Shown here: piece after piece, positions 28-41,900 of the stretch
Numbering within the stretch: position 1 is the first letter of the stretch
Layout: the number at the start of each line of letters is the position of its first letter
DNA from: Bugula neritina
Taxonomy: Eukaryota > Animalia > Bryozoa
Direction: 5' to 3'
Length of the DNA: 64,000 nucleotides
Assembly: GCA_964035545.1 (NCBI GenBank)
Contig: OZ037773.1
Coordinates: 7,531,751-7,595,750, forward strand
Notes under the pieces: model-generated
The model's database searches: none
Told to the model about the DNA's origin: nothing
The model's input: only the letters and a program-made list of their open reading frames with translations
Made by a program: the position numbers and the translations under genes

Positions 28-704
28 CTTTGCAATATTGTGTGTTGCACTTCACGGTTTCCTTTTCACTTCCATAGCAATCATCTCCTCCGTAAGCTGG
101 AGCTGGGTTGGTACAAGTTCTAGTTCTAGATTTATATCCTGTACCACAGCTTTTAGAACAATCTCCGTAATATCCCCACTCACTCCATCCTCCATTTACT
201 GTGAAAATAGTTTTTATATAAAATCCAAATTATTATTGTATTGTTACTTCAAATGCTTGCAACAAGGGCTTGAAATGTTTTTTGATATTGCATGAAGTTG
301 ATGTTAGTAAAGCTCTACCAGACTTACCTTTACTGTAGTGAGAATACTTGTTAACATAACTGCTATAATTGTAGTTAGCAGCCAAAGCCACGCCTGCATA
401 AAACAAAGCACACTTTTAATACAGTTCATGTACAAGGTATATAGTTATAATATAACAAAACTCAAAGGGAACTGAAGTATTTTACTGTTTCAAACTGCTT
501 TCTATCTAACATATTGTTCATATTGGCTACACTGAAAGAGCTACCCTTTTTATTTCCTCAATCAAATAATATTTGCTATTTATGCTCACTTAAGTTGAGC
601 ATTTAATCTAAACTTTATATGGTGCCCTGGCATATTCTATAATAGATTTAATAATTTTTCTACTCACCTATAACAGCGTAAAAGGCAAAAACCTCAGCTT
701 TCAT
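28..704 (-). CDS. Gene A: secreted Tyr-rich TSP1-repeat protein, 3' end beyond window start
   Basis: Exons 704-668 (ATG; MKAEVFAFYAVI), 393-328 (GVALAANYNYSSYVNKYSHYSK) and 198-28 (171 nt; VNGGWSEWGYYGDCSKSCGTGYKSRTRTCTNPAPAYGGDDCYGSEKETVKCNTQYCK). All introns GT-AG, phase 1. Absent from the ORF track, which shows only the antisense ORF 38-295. Confidence 0.9.
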
Positions 705-6142: not shown

Positions 6143-7903
6143 ATGAGAGGACAATTCCTGTGTCTGTTGGCCCTTTTAGGTACGTAATAATATATCAGAA
6201 CATAAAATATGTTTTGTTTGCTCAATGCTGTAATAGTGTTGATTAGTAAATTCACTCTTAATTATCGGTAAATTTTTTCTTAAAACGTAAATAATGTGTG
6301 TAGCGTTGGCATGGAAACGGAAAATAATATATAATGTAAAATTGACCAATTTCTAAGCAAGCAGAAATTCTTATTTATTATTATTCACACAACAAAAGTT
6401 GTCACCTTAACAGAATTTGTCACAAGTGCTGTTTATAACTTTGTGTATTATATTGTCTATACAGGCTTGGCAGCAGCAACTAACTACCATTATAGTAGTT
6501 ACTATGGCAACAAATATTCTACCCAGAAACCATACGTCAAGAAAGGTATATATGTCTAATGGCTTATTTATAATTTATTCATGAGCAAGTAGTATAACCA
6601 TTAATTATATTATATTACAATATATTATATTACAGTATCTTATATCATATTATATCATATTATATTATTTTATTTTATATTATATTGTATCATATTATAT
6701 TATTTTATATTATATTATATCAATTAACTACCTAACCATTAATTTTTAGTTATATTTATTATAACTAATAAATCGGTTAGCTCTAAATATCAAATGAAGA
6801 TTCAAATTGAGAAATGTTCAATTGAGTGAATAGAGGATGGAGTAGTTGGGAACATTATGGTAAATATATTGCGTTCAACTTTTTATAATTTATGCCAATA
6901 TAAAAGCAGAAACTTGCAAACTAAAACCTTTGTAAATCCTTTGCTTGAAACAATTAGTTTCTATTTCAGTTAATGGAGGATGGAGTGAGTGGAGCCATTA
7001 CTCTGCTTGTTCAGCTAACTGTGGAGGTGGAGATAAATACAGAACCAGAACTTGTACCAACCCAGCTCCATCTTACGGAGGAGATGATTGCTATGGAATT
7101 GCTAAACAGTTAGTCAAGTGTAATGTCCAGAAATGTAAAGGTCTGTTTATCTATTGTTAAGAACTGAAAATTACTTTTTCTGATATCATGTTCGGCTAAA
7201 TTACCTAGACCTTGATCATCAGTACATTGAACAAAAAATGCACCATGGTTTCATGATTGAAATAGAAAATTGGGTTATATAGTTCTAGATTCATTAAACA
7301 TCTTAATATATAACCAGTTCCCAGCTTCAGTTTTTACACTTAAATTAGTGCTTGTTTTGATTAAGCAATATCAACTCTTTTAATACACGTTGTGTAGCAG
7401 CGGCAGTTGAAAACAAAGTCCAAATTAACTACAACAATAAAAAATCTTATTGTTATTAGGATACTCTGTGCATGAAAACTAAGCAAATTCACCAACAATA
7501 AATGTGTGCATTATTTTCCAGTTGATGGAGGTTGGACATACTGGACTCACTGGTCTTCTTGTTCTGGTACATGTGGAACTGGCTCTCAGACCAGAACCAG
7601 AAGCTGTACAAACCCTCCACCAGCTTATGGTGGTAAATACTGCTATGGATCCAAACAGGAATCTAAAGCTTGTTATCACACCAAGAAATGTAAGTGATTA
7701 TATTTATTTTTATAACTGTATTTACTGCAATATTGGCTAACAGTGACTAGCACAAGTACTAATGTTTTCAGTATTTTATAAATCAATGTAAGATTTTAGT
7801 GAAAGTCAGCAGTTTAAACCAGATGATGTCTGAGACACATGTTTGAGTACTTTAGATTCTACAAATTTATATTTCTATAGGCTACAGCTATGGTTTGTAC
7901 TAA
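6143..7903 (+). CDS. Gene B: secreted Tyr-rich protein with 2 TSP1 repeats (~159 aa)
   Basis: Exons 6143-6179 (MRGQFLCLLALL), 6465-6545 (GLAAATNYHYSSYYGNKYSTQKPYVKK), 6970-7140 (TSR1), 7522-7689 (TSR2), 7881-7903 (CYSYGLY*). All introns phase 1. AATAAA at 8061. Confidence 0.9.
6603..6722. repeat. (TATTA)n-type microsatellite
   Basis: Degenerate pentamer tandem repeat in a gene B intron. Confidence 0.8.
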
Positions 7904-13894: not shown

Positions 13895-16800
13895 ATGGCT
13901 AAGCTACATCTACTGTTAGGAATAGCAGCTTTAATAAGTAAGTATTTTATTTATATGTTAGCAATCAGTTGTATTATACAGTAGATCAAATAACTTACGT
14001 AGCCACCAAGGAGATATGTTGTTAAAATGTATATTAATTTCACAGGTTTTTCTTTATCGAGCTGCTTTACATAAAATATCCAATTCTGATGTTTTTGCTA
14101 TTTTACAACTACATTTTTTGAAAGTAATAGTTTTCATAAATAAGTATTTTTATAATTTTTGAGGATTTGCTGCTGAACAGAATAATCATATAAAGTTTAA
14201 AATTTTTTACTACTGTTGGATACAGTTTGACTTGTTTCCATGGTAATGCAGTGCATGTGTTAAAGTTGAACGGAAATACTATGTCATAGTAAATAAATGC
14301 ACTATTATATAGCAAATATGATAACATTGACATTATTTGGCAGGCATTGCAGTTGCCGGGAGTTACGGGTACAATGCATATATCCCAGGATATTTAGGAG
14401 GAGGAGGTAAGATAACTCCTTACTAACTTCAGTCAGTAATAATGATGAATTAATATACTAGATTGTAGCAATGATAGCTCTATAAATTAAAATACTTTAC
14501 ATATTTGGTACAGTGCTGTGTATATTGTAGTATATGCAGTGTAAGGTACATAACGTGTATGGTATATTCAGTGTAGAGTGCGTGATGTTTATAGTATATA
14601 AAATATAGTATATGATGTAAATTTTAAAGTATAAAAGGTGTAAATTTTATAGTGCATTATACAGCATAGAGTACAAAATAATGTTTGTTGTATGCAATTA
14701 ATTATGCAGTTAAGAGCATTCAAAATGTAAATTGTATAGTGTGGTAGAGAGTTTAAAGTATGAGAAGTGTACGTTTTATAGTGTTATAGTATATAGTTTA
14801 TAGAGTGTGTGAGGTCTATGTTGTATAGTGTAACATAGAGTGTAGAGTATATGCAAGGTGTATATTGTACAGTGTGGTACACATAGTAGTTATGTTACAT
14901 CTTGTTGCGTTTAGGTGGATCTTACTCCTATAACTGGGGAAGATGGGGTCACTGGGGATCTTGCAGCAAGCACTGTGGTGGCGGTTACCAGACTAGGACT
15001 AGGGTGTGCACCCCTCCCTCTTACACCAGATACTACCAGCATGCCAGTACGCAGAACAAATGTGCGGGATACAGCTCGGAGACTAGAGTCTGCAACTCTC
15101 ACTACTGTAAAGGTATGATCTACTTTCTACAACTTTCTTCCAAACAAAATCTTTTTATTCGGGTTTTTCCAGGGACAGTGACTTATATAAACTTGCGTGA
15201 GTTTTATCATAACAAGCAGTGAGCTAATTGTTGAGGAATTTTAAATTCAGCTTGTCTGGTCAAACCTTATTGTATAGCAGCATAAATCAAATTGATTTAA
15301 AACACTCTATAGTCTATATTATAATATGAAGTTGAACAATAAGATTTTTTGTGTTTAAGAGGTTGCAAATTACATGTGTTGCTTAGTGTTTTCTGGAATT
15401 GACATTATTTGGATAAGTTAAAACAATATCAGCATAAATCATGTGTATTTATTTTAGTGAATGGCGCATGGAGTGAGTGGGGGTATTATGGAGAATGTTC
15501 TAAGAAATGTGGTACAGGATATAAATCTAGATCTAGAACTTGTACCAACCCAGCTCCATCATATGGTGGTTCAGATTGTTATGGTAGCTCTACTGAAACT
15601 ACAGCTTGCTATGGAACCCACTGTGCAGGTGAGGTTTAATCAATATTGTTAATGGGCTTGCTTGAATGCAACTTAGAGTTTGACAGCTTTTAGTTTCAAC
15701 TTTTAAACAATGCATAAATGTCCAAAACAGTTGCTTCTGTTGAAGGTTTCAAATATGTAATGGTAAATATATTTGACCTGTTTGAACTACGTATTTTTTT
15801 AAAACATTCACTATTTTTTATTTTAGTACATGGCGCATGGAGTGAGTGGGGGTATTATGGAGAATGTTCTAAGAAATGTGGTACAGGATATAAATCTAGA
15901 TCTAGAACTTGCACCAACCCAGCTCCATCATATGGTGGTTCAGATTGTTATGGTAGTTCCACTGAAACTACAGCTTGCTATGGAAATCACTGTGCAGGTG
16001 AGATTGAGTCCATATTTTTTACGATTTTAATTTTATGTTTTGCCATGTTAGGCATTGTATTGATGTTTAGAATGTTGTTTTTTGCAGTTTGGTAACTGTA
16101 ATCAAAGATAAATTTGAGCTATAAACTATGAAAACTTTCTATGATAAAAAATTATTGTCCATTATAGTGAATGAATTTAAAAACAATTACTTTTCATTTT
16201 AGTAAATGGAGGATGGAGTGAGTGGGGATATTACGGAGATTGTTCAAAAAAATGTGGTACAGGATATAAATCTAGATCTAGAACTTGTACCAACCCAGCT
16301 CCATCATATGGTGGTTCAGATTGCTATGGTAGCTCCACTGAAACTACATCGTGCTATGGAAATCATTGTGCAGGTGAGACTGAATCAAAAACTGACAATC
16401 TAAAGGAGTAACTTTTTGAACATTAAAGAAAGACAAACAACATTTTAGATAAATTTATAAGTAGATACATTTGACCTGTAAACTATACATGCAACCTTTT
16501 GCTAAAACAGTTGGTTTTGATTATAGTAAATGGAGGATGGGGTGAATGGGGATATTATGGAGAATGTTCTAAGAAATGTGGTACAGGATATAAATCTAGA
16601 TCTAGAACTTGTACCAACCCAGCTCCATCATATGGTGGTTCAGATTGCTATGGTAGCTCTACTGAAACTACATCTTGCTATGGAACTCACTGTGCAGGTG
16701 AGATTTAGTATATCTTTTTTATGTTTTTAGTTTTAGGTTTTGCCATTTCAAACATTGCATTGATGTCAAAAAGAGTTGCTTCTTTCGAGCTTGGTAACTG

Positions 16801-18818
16801 TAATGAAAGGTAAATTTGAGCTATAAACTATGAAAACATTTTGTGACAACAAATTATTTTTCATTTTAGTAAATGGAGGATGGAGTGAGTGGGGATATTA
16901 TGGAGAATGTTCTAAGAAATGTGGTACAGGATATAAGTCTAGAACTAGAACTTGTACCAACCCAGCTCCATCATATGGTGGTTCAGATTGCTATGGTAGC
17001 TCTACTGAAACTACAGCTTGCTATGGAAATTACTGTGCAGGTGAGATTTAATCAATATTAAATACAATTTAAAAGAATAAATTTTCAGATATTATATAGA
17101 GGCAAGCATGCTGTTTAACTTTCTAAGTTGATGAAAATATAATAACAAAACAACCATACTTTATACTTTTGCTTAAATGATCAGTTTTTTATAGTAAATG
17201 GAGGATGGAGTGAGTGGGGGTATTATGGAGAATGTTCTAAGAAATGTGGTACAGGATATAAATCTAGATCTAGAACTTGTACCAACCCAGCTCCATCATA
17301 TGGTGGTTCAGATTGCTATGGTAGCTCCACTGAAACTACAGCTTGTTATGGAACTCACTGTCCAGGTATGTATGGCACTTAAGTCTATGAACTCCGCATT
17401 TAGTGGTAAAGCCGTATATTGTCGATATTGTCCAACAGAAAACGCAGTGTATGTTTACACTTGGTGCTGCAGTTGATGGAAACTGGAGTAACTGGGGATA
17501 CTATAGCTCATGCTCAGTTACCTGTGGAACAGGCTACAAGACAAAGACGAGACACTGTAACAACCCAGCCCCAAGCTATGGTGGAAACACATGCTATGGA
17601 AGTAACAGCCACACCGTCAGCTGCAATGCTGGTTATTGCAAAGGTACCTGATTTACTCTGTACTCTGCATATTCTATACTCTGTAGTTTGCACTCTATAA
17701 TACTCTATACTTAGTACCCTATATTCTCTATATTCTATACTCTGTACTCTAGCTGTACTCTGTACTCTATAATACTCTACACTTAGCACTCTCTATTCTC
17801 TATATTCTATATTCTGTACTCTGTACTCTGTACTCTGTACTCTGTACTCTGTACTCTGCACTCTGCACTCTGCAACCTGTACTCTGTAATCTGTATTCTA
17901 TACTCTATACTCTGTACTCTGTACTCTGTACTCTGTACTCTGTATTCTATACTCTGTAAGCTGCACTCTATACTCTATTATATATTATTTAATACTCTCT
18001 ATACTCTTTATACTCTTTATACTCTATGATACTCTATATTCAGTACTCTATACTCTATATTCTATACTTGACACTCTATTCTCAGTACTTTATACTCTGT
18101 GTCCTATTCTTTATATTTTACACTATATCTTCCATAATCTTTGGTCTACTTTCTATGATCTATGATCTATGCTCTATACTCGGTAATCTATTCACAAAAA
18201 TCTATACTCTATAATATGTCTTCTATGCTCTATATCTTACACTCTATCCGTCTCAGTCTAATGTTTTATGCTCTTATATACTCTGTATTCTGTAATTGAT
18301 GTGGTATACCCTTTACTCCATGCTTTATACTTTATACTATATGCTCTATAATCTATACTTAATACACTATTTTTATGTTTTACATTCAGCATTCTAGACT
18401 TTCCTATCTTCACACACTTTATCTTATCTTTTTTTATCCTATGCTGTTCTACCCTTGATAATGCATTGGTACGCACCTTACATATTTAGCTTGTATATTC
18501 CTTTATTTCTTGTTGCGAGCCGTACTAATCCACAATCTACAAACTCTTCATACAAACTTTCATACAAAAACTTTGTAACAAATTATATCTAGAAATAACT
18601 AAACGTGGTAGATATTTTTTAAGCATATAGATAAAACTCCCTGTCTATCACCCTTTTTATTTTAATTTTTTATATGTTACTATGCATTATCATCACTGCT
18701 AAACCGATCTGGCAATGAAAACGTGGCTTGACTCCCCGACTTCTTGAAGGTTGCAATGCATGGTAAACCGAAATATGATTACGTTGTGACTTTTGTGCTT
18801 TTAGGTGGTTACTACTAA
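13895..18818 (+). CDS. Gene C: secreted Tyr/Gly-rich protein with 8 TSP1 repeats (~504 aa)
   Basis: Exons 13895-13937 (MAKLHLLLGIAALI), 14344-14406 (SIAVAGSYGYNAYIPGYLGGG), 14915-15112, seven 171-nt exons (15458-15628, 15827-15997, 16203-16373, 16527-16697, 16870-17040, 17195-17365, 17473-17643) and 18805-18818 (GGYY*). All phase 1. AATAAA at 18897. Confidence 0.92.
15142..15205 (+). mobile_element. 3' fragment of the tRNA-derived SINE
   Basis: ...cagggacagtgacttatataaacttgcgtgagtttt matches the tail of the SINE at 22788-23004 (cagggattgcgactataaacttgcgtgagttttt). Confidence 0.55.
17650..18400 (+). repeat. 7-bp satellite (CTCTGTA/CTCTATA)n, decaying toward its 3' end
   Basis: Perfect ctctgta runs at ~17810-17945 with degenerate flanks, in the last intron of gene C. 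Confidence 0.9.
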
Positions 18819-19822: not shown

Positions 19823-21342
19823 TTAATAGTAAGGACCTACAAACATATTCTTAAAGTGCATTTGTAGTTGAAGAAATATTATTAGCAACGCACTAAATAA
19901 ACACAATATGCATTAGGTTATAGTTCAATATAATAATTATATATAATGCACATTACAAAATATATATTATATATCTTGAACTATATAATTATACAATTTA
20001 TATCACACATTAAAAGTATTTATAAAAGTTATTAAACCATACAGTTATATAATTCTATAAATTGTATATAAAAAAAATAATTTAGAAGTACTCATTATAA
20101 CATTTTTAGTGCATGGAGGAGGAAATATAAATAATTTCTAATTTTGATGTTAAAACATCACTAACACACGTGTCTAGCTGTTCATTTAAAAAAGGTATTG
20201 TCACTCTATCATTGTTGAAGTGAAGAACTTTAAACAAAGAAAACCTAATCAATTACCAGCCTCTGTTGTGACAAAGAAAAAATGGTTTACGCGAAAGCTT
20301 TGAGTTTCAAGTTCCAACTAAAAGGGCCACCATCAATTTATATGGAACAACTTCATTAAAGAGACTTCATCAAAACTACTACTTAAAAAGAATCAATTAT
20401 CTTAAACTCAGAAGCAAAATTGCAATGAATCTGTAACCCAAGCTAATAAAAAAATTGCTCTGCAGATTGAGTTTAGATAATTATCAAACAGCTTTTATAG
20501 CCTGTGTTATATAAACACCGCCACCCTTCTATGCTCTAAAGATAGACTTTTAACTATTAGTACTAACCACAGTTGTGCCCCTTGCAAGAGCGACTCTGAT
20601 TGCCTGAACCACGGCAAGATCTCTTCTTGTAGTGACCTTTGACAATACAAGTTCTTTTTCTGTACTGCTTGCCCGATCCACATCTCTTGTTGCAGCTTGA
20701 CCATGAACCCCACTTGCTCCAGTATGCTATACATATGACATATTAGAGAATAAGTTTGACTGACACTGCAGGTGTCTGCAAGTGATCATAATACGTGTAT
20801 GACAAGGTCTATATCCAGTAGAAAAATAGATTACCCAAGAAAGTTTGTTCTAGGAATAGTAAATATAAAACTCTGCCTTGCGTCTGGTGCTCACACTGTA
20901 CAGAAAATATTATAATAATAACTAATCTTTTGTATGAATACTTGCGTGTGATAACAGCGTGGCATTTGTAGCTATGGTAGTATGAGCTTTAAATGTTTGA
21001 TGACAAGTTGTCATGACTCACTCACCTTTTCGAACAGGTGATCGCTCTTCACTACTTTCACTGCTGCTTTTCTTGCCTTTGCCATGATGCTTCTTTCCAG
21101 CCATGACATCGCTTGCCAATACGGCTGCAACAGAAGTTACACAAAAGTGACCCTTTGACATGCTAACAATTAGTAACAATTTGTCAATAACTGCACTCTC
21201 AAAGGAAACTATTGGCGGCACACATTATAGTTGCGGTGCTTTGTGGTAGTTGTCACCACATGCTAAAGTATGTCATTTTGATGCACTTACCAATGACAAG
21301 GGCGATAGCAAGGGCTAGAAAGGTCAGTTTCATGTAATTCAT
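19823..21342 (-). CDS. Gene D: secreted basic protein with 1 TSP1 repeat (~107 aa)
   Basis: Exons 21342-21291 (MNYMKLTFLALAIALVI), 21124-21026 (AVLASDVMAGKKHHGKGKKSSSESSEERSPVRK), 20726-20568 (AYWSKWGSWSSCNKRCGSGKQYRKRTCIVKGHYKKRSCRGSGNQSRSCKGHNC), 19836-19823 (GPYY*). Confidence 0.9.
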
Positions 21343-22064
21343 GCTAAAAAATATAAAACCATTAAAATATATAACTTATATAAATAAAAATAAAAACATA
21401 CATATTTTAAAATTATAAATAAAGACATATTGTATATGTATTATGTAGATGTAAAGAAATGGAAATCACATGTAAAAACATAAGCATATAAGTGCATAAA
21501 TATCAGAAACCATAAGTATCTGTGTGAATTGTTATAGTTGTAACTTTGATTGGAAACCAATAAGGAGTTTCGTTTTGTTTTGGTAACAATATATTTTCTC
21601 CATTGCAACTTTTCTCAATCTGACGCAACTTTTTAGTTATTAGGTCCTTATGAAATACTTTTTTTTAAATATAAAATGAAGCTTATTATTTCAAAATGTG
21701 AAAGAAGTTTTTTCAATTTTATTTATTTAAAATTGTAAAAGCTGGTTATAGAGGTATGTCAAGCTAGGTGTTATGCAATCAATATAATATAATATAATAT
21801 AATGCAATATAAATATTCATTACAAATGCTTCCACAATTTATATATATATTATGCATTTTCTTGATTGGAATACACTGGAATACAGAAATAAGAAGCATA
21901 TGGCTATAATACCCTCACTACAATAATTAGTCTTTATGTTTGCACGCATGAAGTGTCTATCTGCATAATTTACCAACTATTTTGTTAGAAAAAGAATCTG
22001 CAGTTGTGTAAAAAACCATATAAGCTATAGTTCTGTAGAGGCAGTGGAGGTAAAGTATACTTAC

Positions 22065-22240
22065 ATGAAGTAATGAGTTTAGTATTGAGAATCAACCTGT
22101 GTGTATAGTCTGAGAATCTTCAACTAAGTCTGACAAACTTTTCCATACTTCCACTTATATATACTTTTGTACAGGAAGTAGCGTAACGTCAGATGAGTCG
22201 GCAAACACACAGTCGGGACTTTGTATGTGACGTCACCAGC
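22065..22240 (-). promoter_or_regulatory. Gene D promoter and non-coding exon 1 (CRE, ETS, TATA)
   Basis: TGACGTCA at 22228-22235, ACAGGAAGT at 22171-22179, TATATAA at ~22155-22163, GTAAGT donor at 22064. Block conserved in E and F. Confidence 0.75.
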
Positions 22241-23004: not shown

Positions 23005-26000
23005 CTTAGCAACATGTTAAATGCTCAATAAAACATACTAATTCCCTAGTACTACAATATATACTTGTAAAAAAGGAATTTTGTGCACAAAGAATGTTGG
23101 TATTTAATACTAGGGCTAAGATAAGTAAATAGTTTTTAATCTAAGTGTATTTAAGAAGTTGGTGTAGTATCTAACTTCTTTTTGCAATAAAATAATAATT
23201 TATGGATAACTTGCAAATAAAATATTTTTAATAATTGAAAACAAAATCAAATTTGCATATTCACGATTGTAATACATTTGTGATAAGTTGTGTTCAATTA
23301 TCTTGGAAAGAAGACTGGAAAAAAGACGGCAAAAACTGATATATTTTCTACTTTTTAATACTTCCAGTTAACATGATATATAACACTTCATGTGACATAT
23401 AGTCAATGCTTTATATATAGTATATATTCATCTGAAACTGATAGTTTTCAGGATTCTTATTATTTAATGAGCAATATCTATATTATGAGGTAAAATTTCC
23501 TTGTTGATGATATGAAGTGACATTGAATATTTATTCTTGTGTAACATGTCCCACTATAGGGCTGTTAAACAGCACAAATGTAAACTTCAATGCATGTTTA
23601 TTAAATATTCAAATATTTTCTCAAATCTTACTCTATTAAACATTCCATTAGTATGTTTAGGAGCAATTATTGTGCCCACTTCCCTCTACCCCCCCCCCCC
23701 CTCCTTCACACCGGGCTGTATTGTAAAAATGTCTTCCTTTGATAACAGTTTTCATTGTTATTTTATTTCTTACATATACTCATCATCAGTTCAGGCACAT
23801 CATTGCTACAGCAGCAATTTAAAGATGCTAGAGTAGTGCAGGGAATAAATTTTATTTCATAATAAAAACTTTTTTTAACCAATTATAACTATTGATGTAA
23901 TACTTCATATATTCTGTTTAAACCTGTGGCAGACAGTACCTGCAGCATATATTAAACAGATTTTACATTTTTCGCCATGTTCTTTATTCATACTGGTGAA
24001 CCAATGAATAAGTCAATCCTTCAGGTTTTGAAGGCAATCTGTAAGCTGATGTTATTAATGTATATCAAATCGTTTTGACCAAGTATAAACCCACTGTGCT
24101 CTAAACAGCAAATTAGTTTCAAACTGATGGATATATTTAGTTGGATTTGTTCGTTTTACTTTCATACTTTGAGCAGATAAGGTTTATTGGAATCTATTAT
24201 CTTGCCAGTCGGTACATAGTTTATTTAAGTACAGGGAGCTTCTAAGTTTTTTATACTATAATTTTTGTAATTTTGTGTTATTAATAACATACCAAAATAC
24301 TTGTATAATTTTTTTTCAAATAAAAAAAGATGCATTGAAAACTGAGCTACCATGGATACTTTATTAGCCATTGGAGCGTGACAGAGACAATCGTATCTAT
24401 TACTAGATGTTTATTATTATATATCGATCTACTGTATATTAGTTGTCCATAATTGGGTAAGGGATTATTATTTTGTTAAGTAATAACCATAAGGTTAAAT
24501 CTTCCACCTGTTCAACCAGTGGAAAACTACCCATGAATCATCAATATCTATAAAAGGTTAGATAAATCCCCGGCAAGACTAGGTGATGTTGACATAGGAA
24601 ATATAAGATGGACTTAAGCTGAAATAATTTACAAATAATATACCTATTTGAGTAAAGAATTTGAAGATGTATAGAATAACAATTGCTCCCTTGACATATG
24701 CAGTTTTTTACTTTTGAAAAATTATAATTTAAAAAGTTTTTTTTTTTATATGAGCATTAACATCGATCAATGTTTTTGTGCTCTAAAAAATTTAAAATTT
24801 AATTCTTTTAGCTTTTTCTGATTGAACTGGTAGCAAATTTATCCTCATAAACCATAATTTTAAAATTTAATTTTAAAACTGGAAAATGCAGTTTGTAGGC
24901 TGATCAATAAAATATATAAACTAGCATATATAATGTAATATCTCTGAAAAGGATACTCTATATGCTATCAAAGAACGGTGAAAAGTTAAATTGTAAACTT
25001 CAACTCTACCAGAGTGCAGGCTCATTCCCCATAGCTAAAACTATAAGAACAATTTATTAATAATTTTATTCATGCAGTTTAAAAAACAATTAGAGCATGC
25101 ATGAGAAAAAACTCTTGACTTCAATAAATTTTAGTTTAAAAACTTTTAAGCCTCATGATATAACGGAATACCATAAGTAATTAAAAACTATCATGGCACT
25201 ATAATATAAACACAACTAATATTATTATTAGACACAAAATTAAAAAATATAATTTCTAAAAAATATTAGGTATAATAGGTATAATCTTGAGAATTTTGGA
25301 AGTTAAGAATATTTCACAGTGTGTTGCAATATTGAATGTCAATTTTTAAAACTTTTAGCCTATAACTTTTAGCTTTTTAGAAGCATTCGGGTTTAGTGTT
25401 CTCAGACCTACGGGTATTGTTTACGTTGCTAAGATGCCAAATTCAACTCAGGCTGTAACAGAAAAAGTTGGTTTAAAATGTGAAATGAGGAAGTAGGTGC
25501 ACTAAAGGGGAAATTGATAGACGCCTGTGTTTTAGATTAAAAAGTAGCAAAAACTCACATCCACAGGAATTTTATAAAATAAGCATTAAAGAACTTAGGC
25601 TATTAAAATTTCTCTACCACTGCACCTAAATTGATCCGAAGAGCTATACGTGAATGCAGATCTACGTAAATTAATGTTGAACTTTTAAACTAACATATTT
25701 ACCCTTAAAAAGTTGCTATACTAGCTGTTTACTAGTCACAATTTATATGCATTGACTATAGCTGCAGTGCTATTGAACCACGAGGCTATTTATGCACTGT
25801 AGATCAGTTTTGATTTCTATATAATGTGATTTTTTTTGTTAGACCAAATAGCAACTTGACATGTTTATCGGCCTTTCGTAAAATAAAATCAAACAACGAT
25901 TATTCAAACTATATAAGTGTACATAGATTACATATTAATATGAAGGATCCTTTGAGAAATTATGATTGAATGCCTAAAACTGCATTCTTTAATAATATTT

Positions 26001-26009
26001 AAGGTTGGC

Positions 26010-26182
26010 TGGTTGATGTCACATACAAAGTCTCAGTTGTGTGTTTGCTGACTCATCTGACGTTACGCTACTTCCTGTACGAAAGTGTATATAAGTGGAG
26101 GTGTGGAAGAGTTTGTCAGACTCAGTTGAAGATTCTCAGACTACACACAGGTTGATTCTCAATACTAAACTCATTACTTCAT
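26010..26182 (+). promoter_or_regulatory. Gene E promoter and non-coding exon 1 (AP-1, half-CRE, ETS, TATA)
   Basis: TGATGTCA at 26014, TGACTCA at 26049-26055, TGACGT, ACTTCCTGT, TATATAA at 26088-26094, GTAAGT donor at 26183. Inverted copy of the D promoter. Confidence 0.75.
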
Positions 26183-26478
26183 GTAAGTATACTTTATTTG
26201 CTCTGTTTTTACATAACTATAAACTATTTTTCTAACAAAAGATTTAGCAAAGTGTATATAATAGATTTATGCAAAACGTTGCAAGGTGCACAACTCTTTA
26301 TTTGTTAATTGTAATCAAAGTGATAATAAATTTTCTAAAAGAATCTTATTGCCTAAATACTTTCATGTCTTTTTTGTTTTTCAATATTTTTGCACTTTTT
26401 TATATATTTATATTTCTACAGATCGAGCTATCTATAATTTTTTTCTAATCCATTTATAAACCTTTCATATTTTGCAGC

Positions 26479-27691
26479 ATGAATTTTATGAAGCTGACCT
26501 TTCTAGCACTCACTGCCCTCTTTGTCCTTAGTAAGTGTATCATAATTATTATATATCTAAGCATGTGTTGACAACTCCCAAGTAGCTTTCACACATGCAA
26601 CAGTTTGTTATCTGTTGAGTTGCATATTTTTGCAACTAGTTCAACAACAAATTGAATGTATAAAATATATAGGCTAACACTACTGTTTTCTGTAGATCAC
26701 AATTCATGAGCCACAATAAAAAAACAATTGTTCAAACAATAAAATTTAAAATAACTTTATTGTCCCAAACGATTATATATAACATATTTCACATTTAATT
26801 AGGTGTTATCTATCTGATAGCGTATAAAAGGTTCATCACCTGCTTTCCATCAAGTTGTACTAATTTGAGTGTGTCACTTTGTTACCATATGTCAGTGTGA
26901 CACTTTGTTACCATGTCAATGTATGTGACACTTTTGTTGCAGCTGTGTTGACAGAAAATGTCATGGCTGGAAAGAAGCATCGTGGCAAAGGCAGAAAAGG
27001 TAGCAGTGAAAGCAGTGAAGACCGATCACATGTTAGAAAAGGTGAGAAAGTCGTGATCTTTTGAAATGATCCATCTTTATACTAAAATAGTGTTATTTTT
27101 ATGCTGTTGCTAAGTTTGATTATTCATATAAAGAGATAATAATATAAATATATATTATCAGCAATTATTAAACATATTCTGCACAAACTCTGTCAACAAC
27201 ATACAAGGCATAGTACATGGTGCACTATAGCTGCAACAAACCTCTGCAACAAACTATTTCTTTGCTCAAAACATACTTTATATATCATGCACCATATTGT
27301 GATTGCACCTGCAGACACCTGCTTGCAGTGTCATGCAGTCAAACTAACTTTTTAATATGTTGTGTACAGGATACCGCCGTTCATGCAGGGGACGCAGGTG
27401 TGGAAAAGGTCAGTTAATAATTATTAAGACTTCATTTTGCCAGCATATAGATTGCTTATTATGTTTAAAATTATGAGTTATTTAATCATACATAGCTGTT
27501 ATTATATAATAAACGATTCAATATTGTGAATCTGAACTACATGCATGATACATGATACGTATATTTGTTTTGTAATTTATATTATACAAAGATATGCTGG
27601 AAAAATTATTTTTTCACTCAGTAGTGTTAGATTTTTAAATATAAATATAGAAACGTATTTTATCAATATAATTGTAGGTCCTTACTATTAA
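26479..27691 (+). CDS. Gene E: secreted cationic peptide precursor (~67 aa), TSR-deleted paralogue of D/F
   Basis: Exons 26479-26530 (MNFMKLTFLALTALFVL), 26943-27041 (TVLTENVMAGKKHRGKGRKGSSESSEDRSHVRK), 27370-27408 (GYRRSCRGRRCGK), 27678-27691 (GPYY*). Frame and splice sites intact; AATAAA at ~27896. Confidence 0.82.
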
Positions 27692-28754
27692 ACAAGATAA
27701 ACACTTGAACATTCTAGAACGCTGAGAAACTAATATACTGAGATACTGAACACACCTAAAGGTTTTATCAATTTTTATCAATATTCAATATACTTAAATT
27801 TGATTTTGAGATCATGTTGAAATAACATTAGCTTTTCCTAATTTTTTAAATAATGATAATAGAAGTAAATTACAGAATAATTCTTTTTAAATGCAAATAA
27901 ATAAATGATCATGAAAATGCAATACCTTTGGTTTTATTGTAAGTAAATGTTTTATAGACAAGTTATGGAATATTCAATTGAAGCACATTCTTAGAAAAGT
28001 AAGGTTTTACTTTTAGATGTTTCTGTGTTATTCTAACAGCTATAGTACTTCTGGCACAAATATATAAGCTGTAAAAATTTTCTGTTATAATATATGTTGT
28101 CAGCTAGAACGTGTTTGCTAGACATATGATGCTATAACTTTATATTCTGTCATGCATGAACTGTTATATAAAATAACTAACATGAACACTGCTACATATT
28201 TTCCATGCAGAATGCTTCATTGACATCGTTAAAACAACTTCTCTTAAAATGCGAATTTGGGGATTAAGTTATAATTATATGTAGGAAGCAGTTATGCTTT
28301 CATGAATATTGTAGGTACTCTTTGCACTCGCATGTGCAGTTTACCTAATAGTATGCAGTTATAGCATTATTTTAGCATGCGAAGTCTAGCTAATGGCTTA
28401 AAGTTGTAACAGTGTTATTGTTTGTGGAAGTTGTGATAAATTGTAGAATATTTCACAGATGATGCAGATAGCAAGCTTTGTTTTACCAATAATTCTGCTT
28501 CTTGACACGTATAAGATTAGGATAGTTGTGCATTTTAACAATAATTTATTTACTTCTATTCAAAAACAATTATTAAGCAATTCTTTTAATTAGCATTCAA
28601 GAGAGAAAACTTTTAATAAAAATAGCAAAATCTCCATATATTAAATTTAATTATTGTGCATTAAGTTTGATATAGTAATTTTGTTTAGCCAGCGTCCCAG
28701 TAGAATATCCCAGTGTCTCGAAGTTCCAGTTATACGTCATAGCGTTTATGTCAT

Positions 28755-31644
28755 TTAGTAGTATGGGCCTGCAAATATATTAATGAAGTACAATATTGTT
28801 TTTTACAGTTTGAAAATTAGCTGTAGCAATTCACTATGTAAACCAAACAAATAGTTTTGTGTATTTACACACAATATATATCCTGTAATATTTATTTCAT
28901 TTAGTACATCATAATATAATGTACTATATATAATAAATATTACGTAATATATATTCTATAGGTAAATACACAAATCAATATATAGCTTAAAACAAATTCA
29001 GCCAATTTACAAAGAATAATGTTTAGAGCAATTTTATACAGAAAGCACAGTTAAATGAAGATTTCGAATTTGAAGCTAAGAGTCAATGTTTTCATAGCCT
29101 GTGTTATATAAACACAGCCACTCTTTTATAATCTTAATGTACAGTTTTAAGTATTAGTACTAACCACAGTTGTGTCCCTTGCATGAGCGGCTCTGTTTGC
29201 CAAATCCTAGGCAAGAATTGTTCCTGTAGATACCTTTGACAATACAAGTTCTGGTTCTAAACTGTGTGCCAGATCCACATCTGCTAGAGCAGCTTGACCA
29301 TGAGCCCCACTTGCTCCAGTATCCTATAAACAACATATCATAAAGTAAGTTTGACTGACATTGCAGGCAGGTGTCTGCAGGTGATGACAGTGTGACGCCT
29401 AGCACAAGGTTTATTTCAGGTACAGTAAATACCCATGTATGATAATGGTGTAAGAGATGCAGCTATTATAATAATATTATTTAGAAATATTAAATTTGCG
29501 TTAATGAAAACAGGACGGTTGTTTCACCTTTCACAATTATTGGTCCCTCTTCACTGCTTTCACTGCTTCCACTGCTGCGGCTGCTTCTGCTGCTTTTGCT
29601 GCTTCTACTGCTTTTGCTACTTTTGCTACTTTTACTACTTTTACCGCTTCCACTACTTCCGCTACTTCCGCTACTTCCGCTACCTTTCCTGCCTTTGCCA
29701 TGATACTTCTTTCCAGCCATGACGTCATCTGCCAGTACAGCTGAAACAAATGTAAAGACATGATTTTGAAATGTTCAGAAAAGGAACACACTGACCACTG
29801 AAATGCTAACAAAGTGACACATTGACATGCTAACAAAGTGACACATTGACATGCTGACAAAGTGACACATTGACATGCTGACAAAGTGACACGTTGACAT
29901 GCTGACAAAGTGACACATTGACATGCTGACAAAGTGACACGTTGACATGCTCACAAAGTGGCACACTGACATGCTCACAAAGTGACACATTGACGTGTTC
30001 ACAAAGTAGCACATTGACATGCTCACAAAGTGACACATTGACGTGTTCACAAAGTAGCACATTGACATGTTCACAAAGTGACACACTGACATGCTGACAA
30101 AGTGACACATTGACGTGTTCACAAAGTGACACATTGACATGCTGACAAAGTGACACAATGACACATTGGCATGCTGACAAAGTGACACATTGACGTGTTC
30201 ACAAAGTGACACATTGACATGCTGACAAAGTGACACAATGACACATTGGCATGCTGACAAAGTGACACAATGACACATTGACATGCTGACAAAGTGACAC
30301 ATTGACATGCTCACAAAGTGGCACACTGACATGCTCACAAAGTGACACATTGACATGCTGACAAAGTGACACAATGACACATTGGCATGCTGACAAAGTG
30401 ACACATTGACGTGTTCACAAAGTGACACATTGACATGCTGACAAAGTGACACAATGACACATTGGCATGCTGACAAAGTGACACATTGACGTGTTCACAA
30501 AGTGACACATTGACATGCTGACAAAGTGACACAATGACACATTGGCATGCTGACAAAGTGACACATTGACGTGTTCACAAAGTGACACATTGACATGCTG
30601 ACAAAGTGACACAATGACACATTGGCATGCTGACAAAGTGACACAATGACACATTGACATGCTGACAAAGTGACACATTGACATGCTCACAAAGTGGCAC
30701 ACTGACATGTTCACAAAGTGACACATTGACATGCTGACAAAGTGACACAATGACACATTGGCATGCTGACAAAGTGACACATTGACGTGTTCACAAAGTG
30801 ACACATTGACATGCTGACAAAGTGACACAATGACACATTGGCATGCTGACAAAGTGACACAATGACACATTGACATGCTGACAAAGTGGCACATTGACAT
30901 GTTCACAAAGTGACACATTGACATGCTGACAAAGTGACACAATGACATGCTCACTAAGTGACACGTTGATTCTTTTGCAAAGTGAAAAAAATGGCACAGA
31001 ATTGATCAGAGAAATTGTGTATATTGTATATTAATATAGGAAATGTGTTATGAAATGTTTTATGAAATGTATAATTAGCCTCCCCAATAAGCAAATTTCT
31101 CAAATTCATATTAGAAAAAACTTTTTAGGCGGCGTAACTTGCGACAAATCGAGAACATAGATGGGTAGCTCATTTGCATTGCAATTTATGGCTCTAGTGT
31201 GTTATATTTGCTAGAAGGAAATATACAGAAGACCGAAACTCAACATTCAGCAGTATACATTTTCACTACTATCAATTCAAATTTTAATGCACATTTATTT
31301 CAAAAATGTTTAACTGTTTAAACAAATCCTCATTTCAATCAACTATAAATTATAAAGAAACATACATCACACGGCATACCATATAAATTGCTTCAACTTC
31401 AGTTATTAGCTCCTTACTTGCTACTAATAAAAACTGAGAGCTTTTCAAAACCCACCCCAAAAGAAAGTACTAACAACACACATTATAGTTACATTGCTGT
31501 CAGCTTTAACAAATAATAGTGTGTTGTATGTGTGAGAAAGTATGTTAGAGAATGTCATCAGATGCTAAGGTATATAATTATTCTTTACTTACCAATGACA
31601 AGGGCGATAGCAAGTGCTAGAAAAGTCAATTTCATGAAATTCAT
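28755..31644 (-). CDS. Gene F: secreted Ser/Lys-rich protein with 1 TSP1 repeat (~145 aa)
   Basis: Exons 31644-31593 (MNFMKLTFLALAIALVI), 29740-29528 (AVLADDVMAGKKYHGKGRKG, SSG/SSK/SSR repeats, SSESSEEGPIIVK), 29323-29165 (GYWSKWGSWSSCSSRCGSGTQFRTRTC...SCKGHNC), 28768-28755 (GPYY*). Confidence 0.9.
29804..30968. repeat. Intronic minisatellite, 24-bp unit with 32-bp variants
   Basis: Unit gacaaagtgacacattgacatgct; variants carry an extra atgacaca. Accounts for all repetitive ORFs at 29.5-31.0 kb. Confidence 0.95.
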
Positions 31645-32073
31645 GCTACAAAAGATAAAAAGATTTTGAAGAGTGGGTAAGGAAATATGTAGTTAGATAG
31701 ATTGGTATGTGGATATGTAATATAATATAATGATTTAAAAGACATACACTGATAAAATATATGAATAACTCAAGATTTAGATATATTATATATTTAAAAT
31801 TGTATAGACCTTATTTATTTAAGAATTTAAATATATGATTATATAGAAATCTGTACATCTATATATAGATATTATATAGTGATATCAATATATATCGATA
31901 TTTATTGATATATATACAAATATAAATTGCTTCATTTTCAGTAAAACCTTAATGCCCTTTATAAAATGTTAATTTAGTTGCAACTTTTATGCGGAATGTA
32001 GAACTTCAGTTATAAATCCTTAGAAAGAACAACAATCTATAGTTCTGTGTAAGTGTAGGTAAAGTATACTTAC

Positions 32074-32215
32074 ATGAAGTAATGAGTTTAGCAATGAGAA
32101 TGAACCTGTGTGTAGTCTGAGAATCTTCAACTGAGTCTGACAAACTCTTCCATACCTCCACTTATATACACTTTCATACAGGAAGTAGCGTAACGTCAGA
32201 TGAGTTGGCAAACGC
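32074..32215 (-). promoter_or_regulatory. Gene F promoter and non-coding exon 1
   Basis: ACAGGAAGT at 32178-32186, half-CRE, TATATAA at 32162-32168, donor at 32073. Near-identical to the D and E blocks. Confidence 0.75.
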
Positions 32216-35960: not shown

Positions 35961-38900
35961 TCAGCAGGATGCAAGAGAGTGTATAAAAGAGTTGCCATGT
36001 TGCAGCATTTCCTGTTTGATTGCCTCAACTCCGGCTAGAATGTCAGAAGGAGTGGATGAAGACAATTCTTTTAATCTATCAGAAAACCCCTGAATGAGAT
36101 CGTAGCTTTCAATACGCTCTTTTCTCCTCGCACACTTTACCTCTAAACAGAATAGGGAACAGTTATAACATTTGAATTGAGCACCCATACTACTTGTAGG
36201 TTACCCAGGCTATGTTTGTTGATAAAGTGACTGTTACATAAACATTAGAACATTGTATAGTAATAAAATAGTTAATTTCTAGATCACAACTTGCAATACA
36301 TTGTTTTTATATGCTTTAATCAATTAAATTCTGAGCCAATTTTACTAACTGATAACACCAAACTATTATATATATAAAAGTGGTATTTTGTGCATCTACC
36401 GTGAAGCTGAAGTGATTTACCATAGCATGTAAGCTTAGTTTATGGCAGTAGGTGGGTATATACACATTTCATTTGGAGCTTTAGTATATACTACACAATA
36501 GAGTAATAAACTACAGAAATAAAAAGCAGTTTCTTTAAAAATTTTACTTTATTCTGATAATCACCCTCGGTTATTTGAGAAGATAGCGAGTCCAGTGTAG
36601 CTTGAGATTCCACATCTTCCAACTGCTGAGACTTATGACGGGCGTACTCGAGGACTCTTTCCGGAAAGTTAACCATTTTGGCTACATGTAATCCAAAACT
36701 TTGGTCACACACGCCTATAAAAATCAATCACCAATATCAATACAATAAAATGCTGTGCCCAGTACAGCAAGTTACGGTTTTTTTGTTTTGCATTGAATGC
36801 TCAATAAAATTCTTATAATCCCCAAACATGCCTGGTAGCGCTTTGTACAGAGGAGTGACAACATGATGTTATGCAACTACCTGGGAGCACCTTGTATAGA
36901 AGTGTCATCTGATTCTTTTCAGCTAATGCTGATACATGCATGTTGGTGACATGAGGCACTTCATCTGCTAAAGCTGTCATCTCATGGAAATGTGTAGCAA
37001 ATAGCGTGAAACATTTCAATTCTGTGGCGATGTAGCTGTTTGAAAAAATATATAAAAATAATCAAGTTACACATTACATAAAATAAAAATATAATCTAGA
37101 AAAAGGAATTTTGAGCATTTGTTCTTGTTCTGTAGTGTCCAACTATGCCATTGCAAAAGTACAAATCTCGTAAAATGTTAAACTAGTTAGATTAACTGAG
37201 AGTAGGAAATCTCAATAAAATTATTTTGTTTAGAAATATTGTATATTTCATCTGCTTAAACGAACTAATAACTGACATGAATATAAGTGAAGCAATACGT
37301 ACTGAGATATCCCCCAGGCTAAACCAAACCCATCATAGGTAGCTGTTCCACGACCCAGCTCGTCAATGACAATAAGGGACGACTCAGATGCTGCCTAATG
37401 AATCAAAAACACAGAATAATTTAAAGCGACAATGAGAGAAAGAGGTGAAAGAGGAGAGACATGGTAGACTGCTAGCTGAGAGAGAGAGGGGAGAGACAGA
37501 GAGAGGGGGAGAGGGCGAAGGAAGGGGGGAGGGGAAGAGAGAAGTGGAGAGATTTGGAGAGAGAGAAGGGGGAGAGAGAGGGGAGGGGAGAGAGAGGAGA
37601 GAGGCAGGGGGATAGAGGGAGGGAGTAGAGGGAGGGAGTAGAGGGAGGGAGGGGGAAGAGAGAGAGGGAGAGAGAGAGGGAGAGAGAAAGGGAGGGAGAG
37701 AGGGAGGGGGAGAGAGGGAGAGAGAAGGGGGGATAAAAGAAGGGGGAGAAAGAGGAAAATAAAAACTGCTGCTAACCTTAAGTATAGCTGACGACTCCAA
37801 CATTTCTGCCATGAAAGTGGAAATTCCTTTGAGTTGACTGTCTCCAGCCCCAACCCTGCACATAATGCTATCCACTACTGTCACAGTGGCAGATTCACAT
37901 GGTACAAATGAACCCATCTGAGCCATGAGAAAAGTCAGAGCAACCTGTAACAGGACATCAGACAAATGTAACCCTCGTTCCGTTTCTAAAGACTTAATTC
38001 TGTGGAATACTGCCACACCCAGTCTTACTCCTTCCCTACTCCTCATAATTACTGTCACTTAAAACCAGAGTAAAACTTTAGTTTTCAAATTCTCAATAAT
38101 CAGAATAGCACTTTCAGGTAACTCCGTGACCCTCTTGGTATCATGTCAACTCAAAGACAAAACTTAAAAGCACATCCTTACACAAATGTATGCATTTACA
38201 GCTACTCATAGAAATCATTCCAGTGTCAATAGAAATATAATGCACTTACAGGTCTAATGTACTAAAGTACATATGCACTTGCATGTCTAATATACTATCA
38301 TATACGCTTACAGATCTAATGTAGGTACTCTTTCCACCCATGTTAGGTCCAGTTATAATGTGGAACATTGAGTTTTCAGCATTGAACACACAATCATTTG
38401 GAATAACGTCCACATCAATGGCCTCTAAACAAGGATGTCTAAGCTCTTTCAGTTCAGCCACACCTGAGCCTGAAACGAGACGTCATTTACAGGTGTATCT
38501 TAAATAGTTTCTCAACAAAAACTAATTCTCACTGACACCTCAAACTGACAGCATGACACCTCAAACTGACAGCATGACACCCCCAGTTGACAGCATGACA
38601 CCTCCAGTTGACAGGATGACACCTTGAGTTGACAAGATGACACCTCAAGTCAGTTGAAAATTCTAACAACCTTATGATGCAAATTTAGGAAAGCAAAACG
38701 ATAACACACAAGAAATTGAGTAACTAAAACGCAGTGAGTAAGCAATGTCTATGTTTGCCTAAACCTCACACAATCAGAAAGCATTACTGTCAAACATAAT
38801 GCATAAAAAGATAATTAAATTGGGAGTCGTATAAAATGCAGAAATATCATTTTCTATAGGCATTCAGATAAATGTGCTTACCTTTAGGTAGTATCTTGGG

Positions 38901-41900
38901 TCGGACGTACGGTAGAGCGGCATTAGTAGATGCGATGGCCAAGCTGATCACCACATCTAGCTGGGAGACGAGATCTCCTAGTCTGTAGAGAGATTCAGCA
39001 TAACCTCCTACAACCATAGTCACCATGTATACAGGTGGAGACAATAATCTAGAACAATCTCAAGATACGCACTTAATACATGCCTTTGAAGTTTATAAAT
39101 TATTCAACAAAATATAATTCAATAATGTGTCATCAAAATAGCTTTTTTAGATCACTCATGTGAACTCCAGGAGGAATCAGAAGTTTAGAGCACTATATGT
39201 GTATATTATTTGGTCGTACTGAACTCGTAGAGAGAAGACAATCGCTAGAATAAGCCTTTGGCAGAGCAGACTGTGAGAAATCTCCATGCAAAACATTAAA
39301 AATATACCTTAATAATACTGTGATGAAGCACAGCTGATCTATACAATGCTGTCTGTACGCCTCACCTGCAACTTTGATGACTTCGGTGACGACATCTACC
39401 TGGAGCTTCTGGTAAGATCGTTTCAGCTCCGAATGTTCAGGGCTCAGTTTGCTCAGCTTCCTGTTTGTAAAACGAACTCCATCTTTCTTTGTGTCAAGAA
39501 TTTGGAAGTTTTTATTGTTTCTAATCAATTTCTCATCCTAAAAGTGCAGGCAAATGCAGCCAGGGTAGGACGGGATATGCGAACACCTTAAATACTAGCT
39601 CTATCAACTTAAGTATTCCCAACTCCATGAAGAAATGTGAACAAAAAGGCTGAAAGAGTGCGGCGCTGGATAAAATAACTCAACAGAGTGTTAGCAAAGA
39701 CACATGAGTAGTCTAAGGAATGATGCTTACCTTTCTAGTTAGTCTGAGAAAATAGCCAAGATGTGAGCTACTCTCCAGCTTTAGGGCTTTACCTGCCTCC
39801 AGTCCCAGCTCACTGGCCACCTGTTGAGCAGGAAACATTAGATTTATGGCAAACTATATTTTATTTATTTGAAAAGTTAGATTTACTTATTTTTCAGAGC
39901 GATTGAATATATATTAAAAATGTTGTATCAACATAGTAGTAACTAAACTAATAGCAACTAAACTATTAGTAACTAGTAGTAACTGAACTAGTAGTAACTG
40001 AACTTGAAGCAACTAAACTATTAGTAAAGAAACTAGTAGTAACTGTACTAGTAGTAACTAAACTAGTAGCAACTGACTCACACGGTACTCACATGCAGAT
40101 GTAGTAAGACAAGACACAGTTACCTTTTGCAACTCCCTATCCATGCCTTTCTCAAGCTCCTTCATCTGCTCCCCAATCTCACCTAAAGCCTCTTCAAAAT
40201 CTGCCCTCACCAAAAACTCCATCGTCTTCACACTATCCATATCCAAAACCTCTTCAATCAGCGCTGAGAATTTGGAGAGGTCAGTTATTAGTTCCTACGA
40301 GCAGAGAACAGGTTGGTTTACCATGTATGGTTCTACGAAGTATTTGTAATAGAGAATATTGAAGATCCTGATGTACAAGACACGGAGGGGACAGACCTTT
40401 AGTTCAGATGAAAGTACGCTGTTCATAAGTACTCTGTGTTCACCTGTGTACTCGTCCAAGGTTGAGTCAAGGTCAGGCAACTTCGAGAGGCCTTGGTAAA
40501 CTCTGTAGCAATCCTGTCAAAAGCATGCTAAACTATGGAGTACCATTTACATGCAGTGAAGCGCTTTTATATTGAAGAGTATATCTAAAGCACAAGCTAA
40601 CAAAGCACAAGCTAACAAAGCACAAGCCAACAAATACTAACAAACTGTGAAAAAAAATATTGAACTTTGTATTGTGAGAATAGCAGTTGAAGGTTATTGG
40701 GCGTGAATAATGTAATGCGATGGAGAGATCTCAATAACATGGCGAACAGTAAGCAAATATGTCTCTGGAAGGGACAGATAACCTAGAAAACAGAGCAGTC
40801 TAATTCTATAAATCGCCTAACAAAGTATATCTAGAGTTGCTTTCTCTACAGAGAAAGTCCTAGAGAATACCTGAAGAGTTGCTTTCCCTAAAGACAACTT
40901 CTTAGCAATTTTATTGAAGTCAGGCAGAGAGGAGAGGTGCTGTTCGTGGATGGTTTGTCGTATCAGAGAGTCGTGTATAAACACTTCCACCAGATCCAGT
41001 CTCTCTTCTGCAATCACACGTTCAGCCTTGAACTACACTCTACTTTGTGATTACTGAAGTGCTTGCATAGTGGTGGATATACCAAAATTATAATATAAAT
41101 ATCTTACATCTATTTGTCTATAGCGCCACTGTAAGAGCACATGTTGGCAAAAATAAAGTGCCATTTACTAATAAATGACAAAGAACAAACTTTTTGGCTT
41201 TTTTTCTTCATTTGGTAAAACCCTTACATAATCCTAGTGAAAAAATATTTCAGGAGAAAAATTTTTGAAATATCAACAGCTGAGAAAAAAAAATCAATTT
41301 TTCCAACTGCAGTTAGCTGCTTGTACAATTTCAATTTTTCAATCAAGTCATCTTATTAGTTGAAATTTAACCTGAGACTGAGGGCTGAATAACTAGCAGG
41401 ACTAGCTGAATGAACTAACATAATGAGTATATCCTCACCTATCTTATTGACATCCACCAGAGGTTGTAGTATCCACTGCTTCAGAAGCCTCTGGCCACTC
41501 ACAGTCTTGCAGTTGTTCAGCAGCTTATAGAGACACATCTCTTTGCTATCTGCAATACCAGGACCTTAGGCTAACCTGTGAACTCAGGGAGAATCAAGGT
41601 AGAGGCTAAAACCGATGAATTGTTCTACAATCAGCTCTGAGCTGGAGGTGAATGAGCGAAGTAGGTTTGGGTTCTTGAGTTTAGAGTTGGGGGTTTAGTG
41701 AAACCCCCAACTCCAAACTTGATAACCCAAGCAACTGCATTCATTCACCCCCGACTCGAAGCTCCTTGTAGAGCAATTCAAAGCATACGGCTGCTGATTG
41801 GCTAGACTGAAATAACCAACATGTAGGTGACATAACTCTGATTAACAGAATTAAAGGCACTGATTGATATATTATGTAAAACGACACCAATAAGCAAAGA

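Follow-up and report, generated by a model that had tools for sequence, protein, structure and literature searches.

Does a gene whose TSP1-repeat exon has been reduced to 39 nt still encode a working product, and if so, of what kind? The question is raised by gene E, which spans positions 26479-27691 (+) of the window, i.e., the whole stretch of 64,000 nucleotides of Bugula neritina DNA analyzed here, which occupies 7,531,751-7,595,750 of contig 9, is ~31% GC and carries spliced genes. Gene E shares its five-exon plan with two paralogs, gene D (19823-22140, -) and gene F (28755-32150, -), and the initial annotation proposed that internal loss within exon 4 of gene E had given rise to a short cationic peptide with two cysteines.

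Exon boundaries recovered by script for gene E are identical to those proposed in the initial annotation, including an exon 4 of 39 nt where D and F carry a full TSP1 exon of 159 nt (20568-20726 in D and 29165-29323 in F, both -). In all three genes, a 5′UTR exon precedes a 53-nt exon bearing the start codon; next come exon 3, which is 99 nt long in D and E and 213 nt long in F, then exon 4, and finally a 14-nt exon for the protein end and the stop codon. The internal exon boundaries are AG...GT without exception. Homology searches were run exon by exon, with joined translations scripted locally for frame and composition only; the spliced frames are open, giving 107 aa for D, 67 aa for E and 145 aa for F. 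The core promoter of gene E (26052-26095, +) contains a 28-nt element (26052-26079) that is invariant in D, E and F, and a TATA box (26088-26095). Exon 1 (26120-26182, +; donor GT at 26183), the presumed start of which we placed ~30 nt downstream of the TATA box, is near-identical in the three genes and, as read directly from the sequence, contains no upstream ATG. Exon 2 (26478-26530, +), with the start codon ATG at 26479, encodes most of the signal peptide, the hydrophobic core of which is kept. Exon 3 (26943-27041, +) encodes the end of the signal peptide, VMA/G, followed by a polybasic block, a conserved acidic Ser-x-Glu cluster and a basic linker; the cleavage site is that given by the -3/-1 rule applied by eye, with Val at -3 and Ala at -1. 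A conserved intron 3 end (27306-27369, +), containing two CACCTG motifs and the acceptor, precedes exon 4 (27370-27408, +), i.e., the TSP1 remnant, which encodes an Arg-rich C-x4-C tail. Exon 5 (27678-27691, +; stop codon at 27689-27691) encodes a GPYY C-terminus, as it does in D, F and the published protein EB796_024482 described below, and overlapping AATAAA poly(A) signals are present at 27896-27905 (+), in a region that aligns to the 3′ end of F. The boundary check and the alignments of D, E and F agree with the initial annotation in that the promoter, splice sites, stop codon and AATAAA of gene E are all intact.

Several features of the introns are common to the paralogs. The E-box-like CACCTG element, with two copies of the motif, lies at the end of intron 3 in E (27306-27369), D (~20727-20793) and F (~29324-29383), where it may act as an enhancer within the intron or have a part in splicing. 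In intron 2 of F (29792-30969), a 24-nt unit is present in ~47.5 copies; intron 2 of E has ~2.2 copies of a closely related unit of 26 nt immediately before the exon 3 acceptor (26868-26922), and D carries roughly one copy. On this comparison of repeat units, we class the array as a minisatellite that has grown from sequence adjacent to a splice acceptor.

In blastn searches with gene E against its paralogs, the promoter and exon 1 together aligned at an expect value of 1e-79, exon 3 at 2e-36, and the end of the intron before exon 4 at 3e-15; judged by these alignments, the paralogy of D, E and F is far beyond chance. Traits held in common are the promoter, the 5′UTR exon, the exon phases, the signal peptide, a module with a polybasic block and S-x-E sites, and the GPYY end. 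A search of the 216-Mb, 321-contig genome showed that the family has exactly three members, with exon 1 likewise present in three copies only. In D and F, exon 4 encodes a complete group-1 TSP1 repeat with a W-x-x-W motif and six Cys: Pfam TSP_1 scores are 38.5 bits for D and 40.6 bits for F (cut-off 21.6), and both align end to end with the human thrombospondin-1 chains 7yyk and 1lsl, with six of six Cys aligned. Compared with other TSP1-repeat proteins, the family proteins are unusually small (81-119 mature residues) and have one repeat only. Three S-x-E/D sites are retained in the acidic Ser cluster of every family member, and S-x-E/D is the motif of secretory-pathway casein kinases.

Exon 3 of F is Ser-rich and expanded, with Ser-Lys and Ser-Arg repeats that have multiplied. 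Within it, at 29553-29683, coding repeats of 9 nt and 18 nt produce a long Gly/Lys/Arg-Ser-Ser tract; the tract is length-variable, since it differs in both length and order in the published F ortholog, EB796_024484. The D/E/F cluster is adjoined by TSP1-only genes, which are 36-42% identical to exon 4 of D and F: at least nine consecutive, near-identical TSP1-repeat exons are located at 14935-17639 (+), with further TSP1 exons upstream at 6981-7673 (+) and 32-187 (-). Elsewhere in the window, exons of a MutS-family gene are present at 37384-39528 (-; MutS_V 74 bits, MutS_IV weak) within a GC-richer block at 36-46 kb, and a 213-aa open frame at 51645-52283 (+) matches a herpesvirus glycoprotein C-terminal profile at 21 bits, which is below the cut-off of 26.4; this frame is probably low-complexity sequence.

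The initial annotation described exon 4 of gene E as the product of a net in-frame loss of 120 nt. The net change is indeed -120 nt and in frame, and the event resolves into a 126-nt deletion with a 6-nt insertion: in pairwise alignment with F, it is made up of 5 nt from the beginning of the TSP1 exon, 28 nt from the end, and 6 inserted nt. We reject one single deletion of 120 nt in favor of this -126/+6 alignment, and the intermediate length of the exon in EB796_024482 likewise speaks against a single deletion. The retained end of the TSP1 exon is identical to F at 23 of 29 positions around the Cys codons. The inserted nucleotides, GAAAAG, encode Gly-Lys and lie directly before the donor, where they turn its exon side from GTG/GT into AAG/GT, i.e., nearer to the usual consensus, which may aid recognition of so short an exon. 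The deletion was placed by pairwise alignment against F with cheap long gaps, the path against D being ambiguous; this placement was used instead of a three-way MAFFT alignment of the exon 4 flanks, which misplaced the deletion. A tblastn search of 26000-28000 found no further TSP1 remnant in gene E.

What this leaves of the repeat is residue 1 and the last nine residues, including Cys5 and Cys6. Compared with the TSR domain (PF00090) of human thrombospondin-1 and properdin, E keeps these last nine residues with their two Cys and has lost four of the six Cys together with the Trp and Arg ladders, so that it falls outside TSP1 domain membership. It is a homolog of TSP1-repeat proteins by descent, and not a domain member. 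Disulfides in group-1 repeats are C1-C5, C2-C6 and C3-C4 (PMC11990869), and since Cys5 and Cys6 each pair with a different cysteine in this scheme, the two Cys remaining in E were never native partners. They can close a six-residue ring (C-x4-C) or bridge to other molecules.

A second version of gene E is present in the published EB796 assembly of B. neritina (Rayko et al. 2020; PMC7576161), the gene models of which were made by AUGUSTUS with transcriptome hints. Searching with exon 3 of E returned one protein, EB796_024482 (P0001, KAF6017207.1), at 82% identity, and exon translations match published B. neritina proteins at 82-83% identity. This divergence is large for one species; the two assemblies may come from separate members of the B. 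neritina species complex, or from haplotypes that have diverged strongly. EB796_024482 shares with E the type of signal peptide, its E-specific end, the N-terminal module and the GPYY end, and both copies carry the inserted Gly-Lys along with two Arg replacements, H>R and N>R. Searching with exon 4 of F returned EB796_024484 (P0004), the F ortholog, on the same 68,206-bp contig as EB796_024482, and since both orthologs are on one contig, E and F are neighbors in EB796 too. EB796_024482 is an ortholog of E by position as well as by sequence, with a two-Cys, Arg-rich tail in both; it differs in that its exon 4 remnant is nine residues longer (21 codons, compared with 12 in E) and in its lineage-specific Arg gains. 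Its exon 4, back-calculated from the protein, is 66 nt, and in the remnant a degenerate version of the repeat start, which matches Y-W-S-K-W-G-S at 5 of 7 residues, precedes the tail S-R-P-C-K-R-R-R-C.

The deletion of gene E in our window encloses that inferred in EB796_024482. The simplest history that this comparison points to is a loss of 99 nt and a gain of 6 nt before the lineages split, followed by a further loss of 27 nt in the lineage sequenced here. Independent deletions in the two lineages are less likely, and we favor nested ones, given that both copies have the Gly-Lys insertion as well as H>R and N>R. All three exon 4 indels (-99, +6 and -27), two of them inferred from the EB796_024482 protein, are multiples of three.

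That the ortholog is annotated as KAF6017207.1 runs against the expectation that annotation pipelines would probably miss this gene, since at least one pipeline caught it. The EB796_024482 model begins with a spurious 34-residue N-terminal extension, i.e., translated 5′UTR, and the EB796_024484 model retains, and translates, the intron 3 end element and has its last exon read in a different frame, which hides the GPYY end. An all-library HMMER search with EB796_024482 matched only the protein itself and the JGI/IMG ORF P0002, and a word search of proteins matched only itself; JGI metagenome contigs, scanned with the exon-3 protein alignment and an invariant 24-nt promoter word, gave no usable match. 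The JGI/IMG metagenome ORFs P0002 and P0003 cover a D-type exon 3 (compare 21021-21224, -) and come from other Bugula DNA. Position 5 of the mature D peptide is hypervariable, with His, Arg or Gly in the three versions.

Having lost the TSP1 fold, gene E could be a non-functional or near-neutral relic, i.e., a gene deprived of its sole folded domain in which disabling mutations have still to occur, and the evidence from each part of the gene bears on this. Both of the diverged lineages have an open frame, which adds strength to the argument of the initial annotation that gene E is not a pseudogene. With its 67 codons the frame is short, and openness by chance is not rare over such a length. 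If the gene were neutral and the three exon 4 indels independent, the chance of all being multiples of three would be ~1/27. Over 137 aligned columns of the core promoter and exon 1, we counted lineage-specific changes, and E has the fewest (2, compared with 5 in D and 5 in F); set against synonymous distances (dS) of 0.3-0.6 between the paralogs, these few changes indicate that the 5′ region of E has been held still on its own branch. This conservation of the core promoter and 5′UTR, as aligned here, argues against a dead gene; it could in principle reflect gene conversion instead of selection. The 64-nt end of intron 3 in E is 84% identical to F and 74% identical to D, with the remaining intron not alignable, and the retention of this intronic element, the splice sites and the poly(A) signal speaks against a relic. 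Whole-intron global identities were not used as a neutral standard, being inflated by AT-richness and gaps.

In the signal peptide, nonsynonymous changes number ~10.9 on the E branch, compared with 2.9 on the D branch and 0.1 on the F branch, with synonymous branch lengths being similar; the E-branch figure stands against 3.6 synonymous changes, i.e., omega is near 1. This near-neutral rate could mean relaxed constraint, and the rise in nonsynonymous change on the E branch, in both signal peptide and tail, is what a relic would show. So too is the different length of exon 4 in the two assemblies. For exon 3, omega between D and E is 0.33 over 25 codons. Protein libraries searched with HMMER and by words yielded no transcript-derived E protein, which also favors a relic, and the 39-nt exon 4 may be skipped, the skipped form being in frame as well. 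On balance we consider gene E likely to be functional, and a relic unlikely.

Codon comparison bears out that the TSP1 remnant has gained Arg at four sites (S>R, K>R, H>R and N>R). Over the nine tail codons, the counts between D and F are 0 nonsynonymous and 3 synonymous, compared with 5 nonsynonymous and 1 synonymous for E relative to the state that D and F share, where four of four of the replaced residues became Arg; Fisher's test, one-tailed and calculated by hand on these small counts (5:1 compared with 0:3), gives ~0.05. The Arg replacements are A>G or A>C substitutions in a genome that is AT-rich (31% GC), a direction that speaks against a relic. EB796_024482 shares two of the E replacements, does not have the other two, and has a G>R of its own. 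As far as these codons can tell, the pattern fits directional selection for Arg once the tail was freed from the fold; relaxed constraint accounts for part of it.

Such a gain of Arg in both lineages would be expected of an antimicrobial host-defence peptide shaped by an arms race, in which the polybasic N-terminus, together with the Arg-rich C-x4-C tail, would bind microbial envelopes and damage them. The mature peptide has the composition given in the initial annotation (41 aa, 15 K/R, 3 D/E and 2 Cys), and its net charge of +12 in 41 residues would suit this role, as would the fast change of the coding sequence next to a conserved promoter and 5′UTR, which is a pattern known from defence peptide families. 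The cationic character is nevertheless not the novelty of gene E that it had been taken for: D and F already have net charges of +19 and +20, with pI >10, and E has therefore inherited its positive charge, carrying it at a higher density than either. With a GRAVY of -2.08 and hydrophobic residues making up 7%, E would have no amphipathic surface, and on this composition it does not fit a classical membrane-active amphipathic peptide. Set against what defines cationic antimicrobial peptides, E has the positive charge and the short secreted precursor, and lacks the hydrophobic or amphipathic character. Purely electrostatic action is strongly screened at the salinity of seawater, and the conserved S-x-E cluster, if phosphorylated, would reduce the charge. 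We regard host defence as a doubtful primary role.

A further reading is that E, having their putative N-terminal binding module and no TSP1 domain, modulates D and F or acts as their decoy, or is a precursor cut at its many dibasic and tribasic sites into smaller peptides. E has its N-terminal module and GPYY end in common with D and F, and the near-identical promoters, which suggest that the three genes are co-expressed, are consistent with this reading, as are the R-x-R-R and K-R-R-R motifs in the tails of E and EB796_024482. The positions of these basic motifs differ between E and EB796_024482, and binding of D or F to anything through the N-terminal module is hypothetical, both of which weigh against this reading; we consider it very improbable.

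We conclude that gene E is real, that it is probably functional, and that it belongs to a family of three genes, restricted to Bugula, for small, secreted and highly cationic proteins, and, with reasonable if not high confidence, we prefer a role as a polyelectrolyte of the matrix, the cuticle or an adhesive secretion. The family plan runs from a signal peptide through a polybasic block and an acidic Ser-x-Glu cluster to one group-1 TSP1 repeat and the GPYY end. In E, nested in-frame indels would have worn down the TSP1 exon until Cys5 and Cys6 came to flank an Arg-rich C-x4-C segment, and the predicted product would be an intrinsically disordered polycation of 41 residues without the TSP1 fold, with the N-terminal family module kept. 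Such a peptide would bind polyanions electrostatically and via Arg and Tyr, with no insertion into membranes, and its Arg residues and terminal Tyr would serve as salt-tolerant contacts. Working alongside D and F as a matrix, cuticle or adhesive-secretion polyelectrolyte would then be the first role to consider, with host defence next. The present analysis establishes the structure of the gene, its homology, its ortholog and the conservation of its regulatory sequence, whereas secretion, cleavage of the signal peptide, any disulfide, phosphorylation and the role itself are all predictions from the gene. The Atlas model of EB796_024482 has a pLDDT of 0.48, at which structure matches are meaningless, and the protein atlas gave no usable feature match for this protein.

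If gene E is expressed, it presents a case of a folded extracellular domain that has been whittled down within a single exon while the apparatus for secretion and regulation stayed in place. With 66-nt and 39-nt stages in two assemblies and full-length paralogs adjoining, the order of events can be tested directly, as can the selective regime. More speculatively, positive selection for Arg on the last strand of a TSP1 repeat eroded step by step, with its two cysteines that had not been partners, may have produced a new class of animal effector peptide, in which a salt-tolerant Arg/Tyr “sticker” loop would serve in defence or underwater adhesion and two Bugula lineages would have been caught at different stages. 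Gene E is also an added candidate in the almost unexplored repertoire of secreted peptides in bryozoans, which are fouling organisms with an adhesion and a control of symbionts that matter in practice.

The E ortholog is already known in that it sits in GenBank as a hypothetical protein. In the literature that we searched, we found nothing specific on Bugula antimicrobial peptides or on peptides derived from TSP1, and no description of erosion within one exon that turned a TSP1 repeat into a peptide. Elsewhere, short disintegrins derive from snake venom metalloproteinases, and beta-defensins from big defensins, by domain loss. Gene E resembles these in the stepwise reduction of a disulfide-rich ancestor after duplication, with the signal peptide and regulatory regions kept; it differs in that the loss took place inside one exon, and not by removal of whole exons or domains, and in that the remnant has no folded core. 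In composition, the closer likeness is to the histatin and statherin peptides of saliva, which are short, secreted, disordered and rich in His, Lys, Arg and Tyr, with an acidic Ser-x-Glu phosphorylation cluster. These peptides are not homologous to E, which has a Cys pair and in which phosphorylation is putative, and the likeness is by analogy only; it would extend to a mode of action by binding to surfaces with no amphipathic helix.
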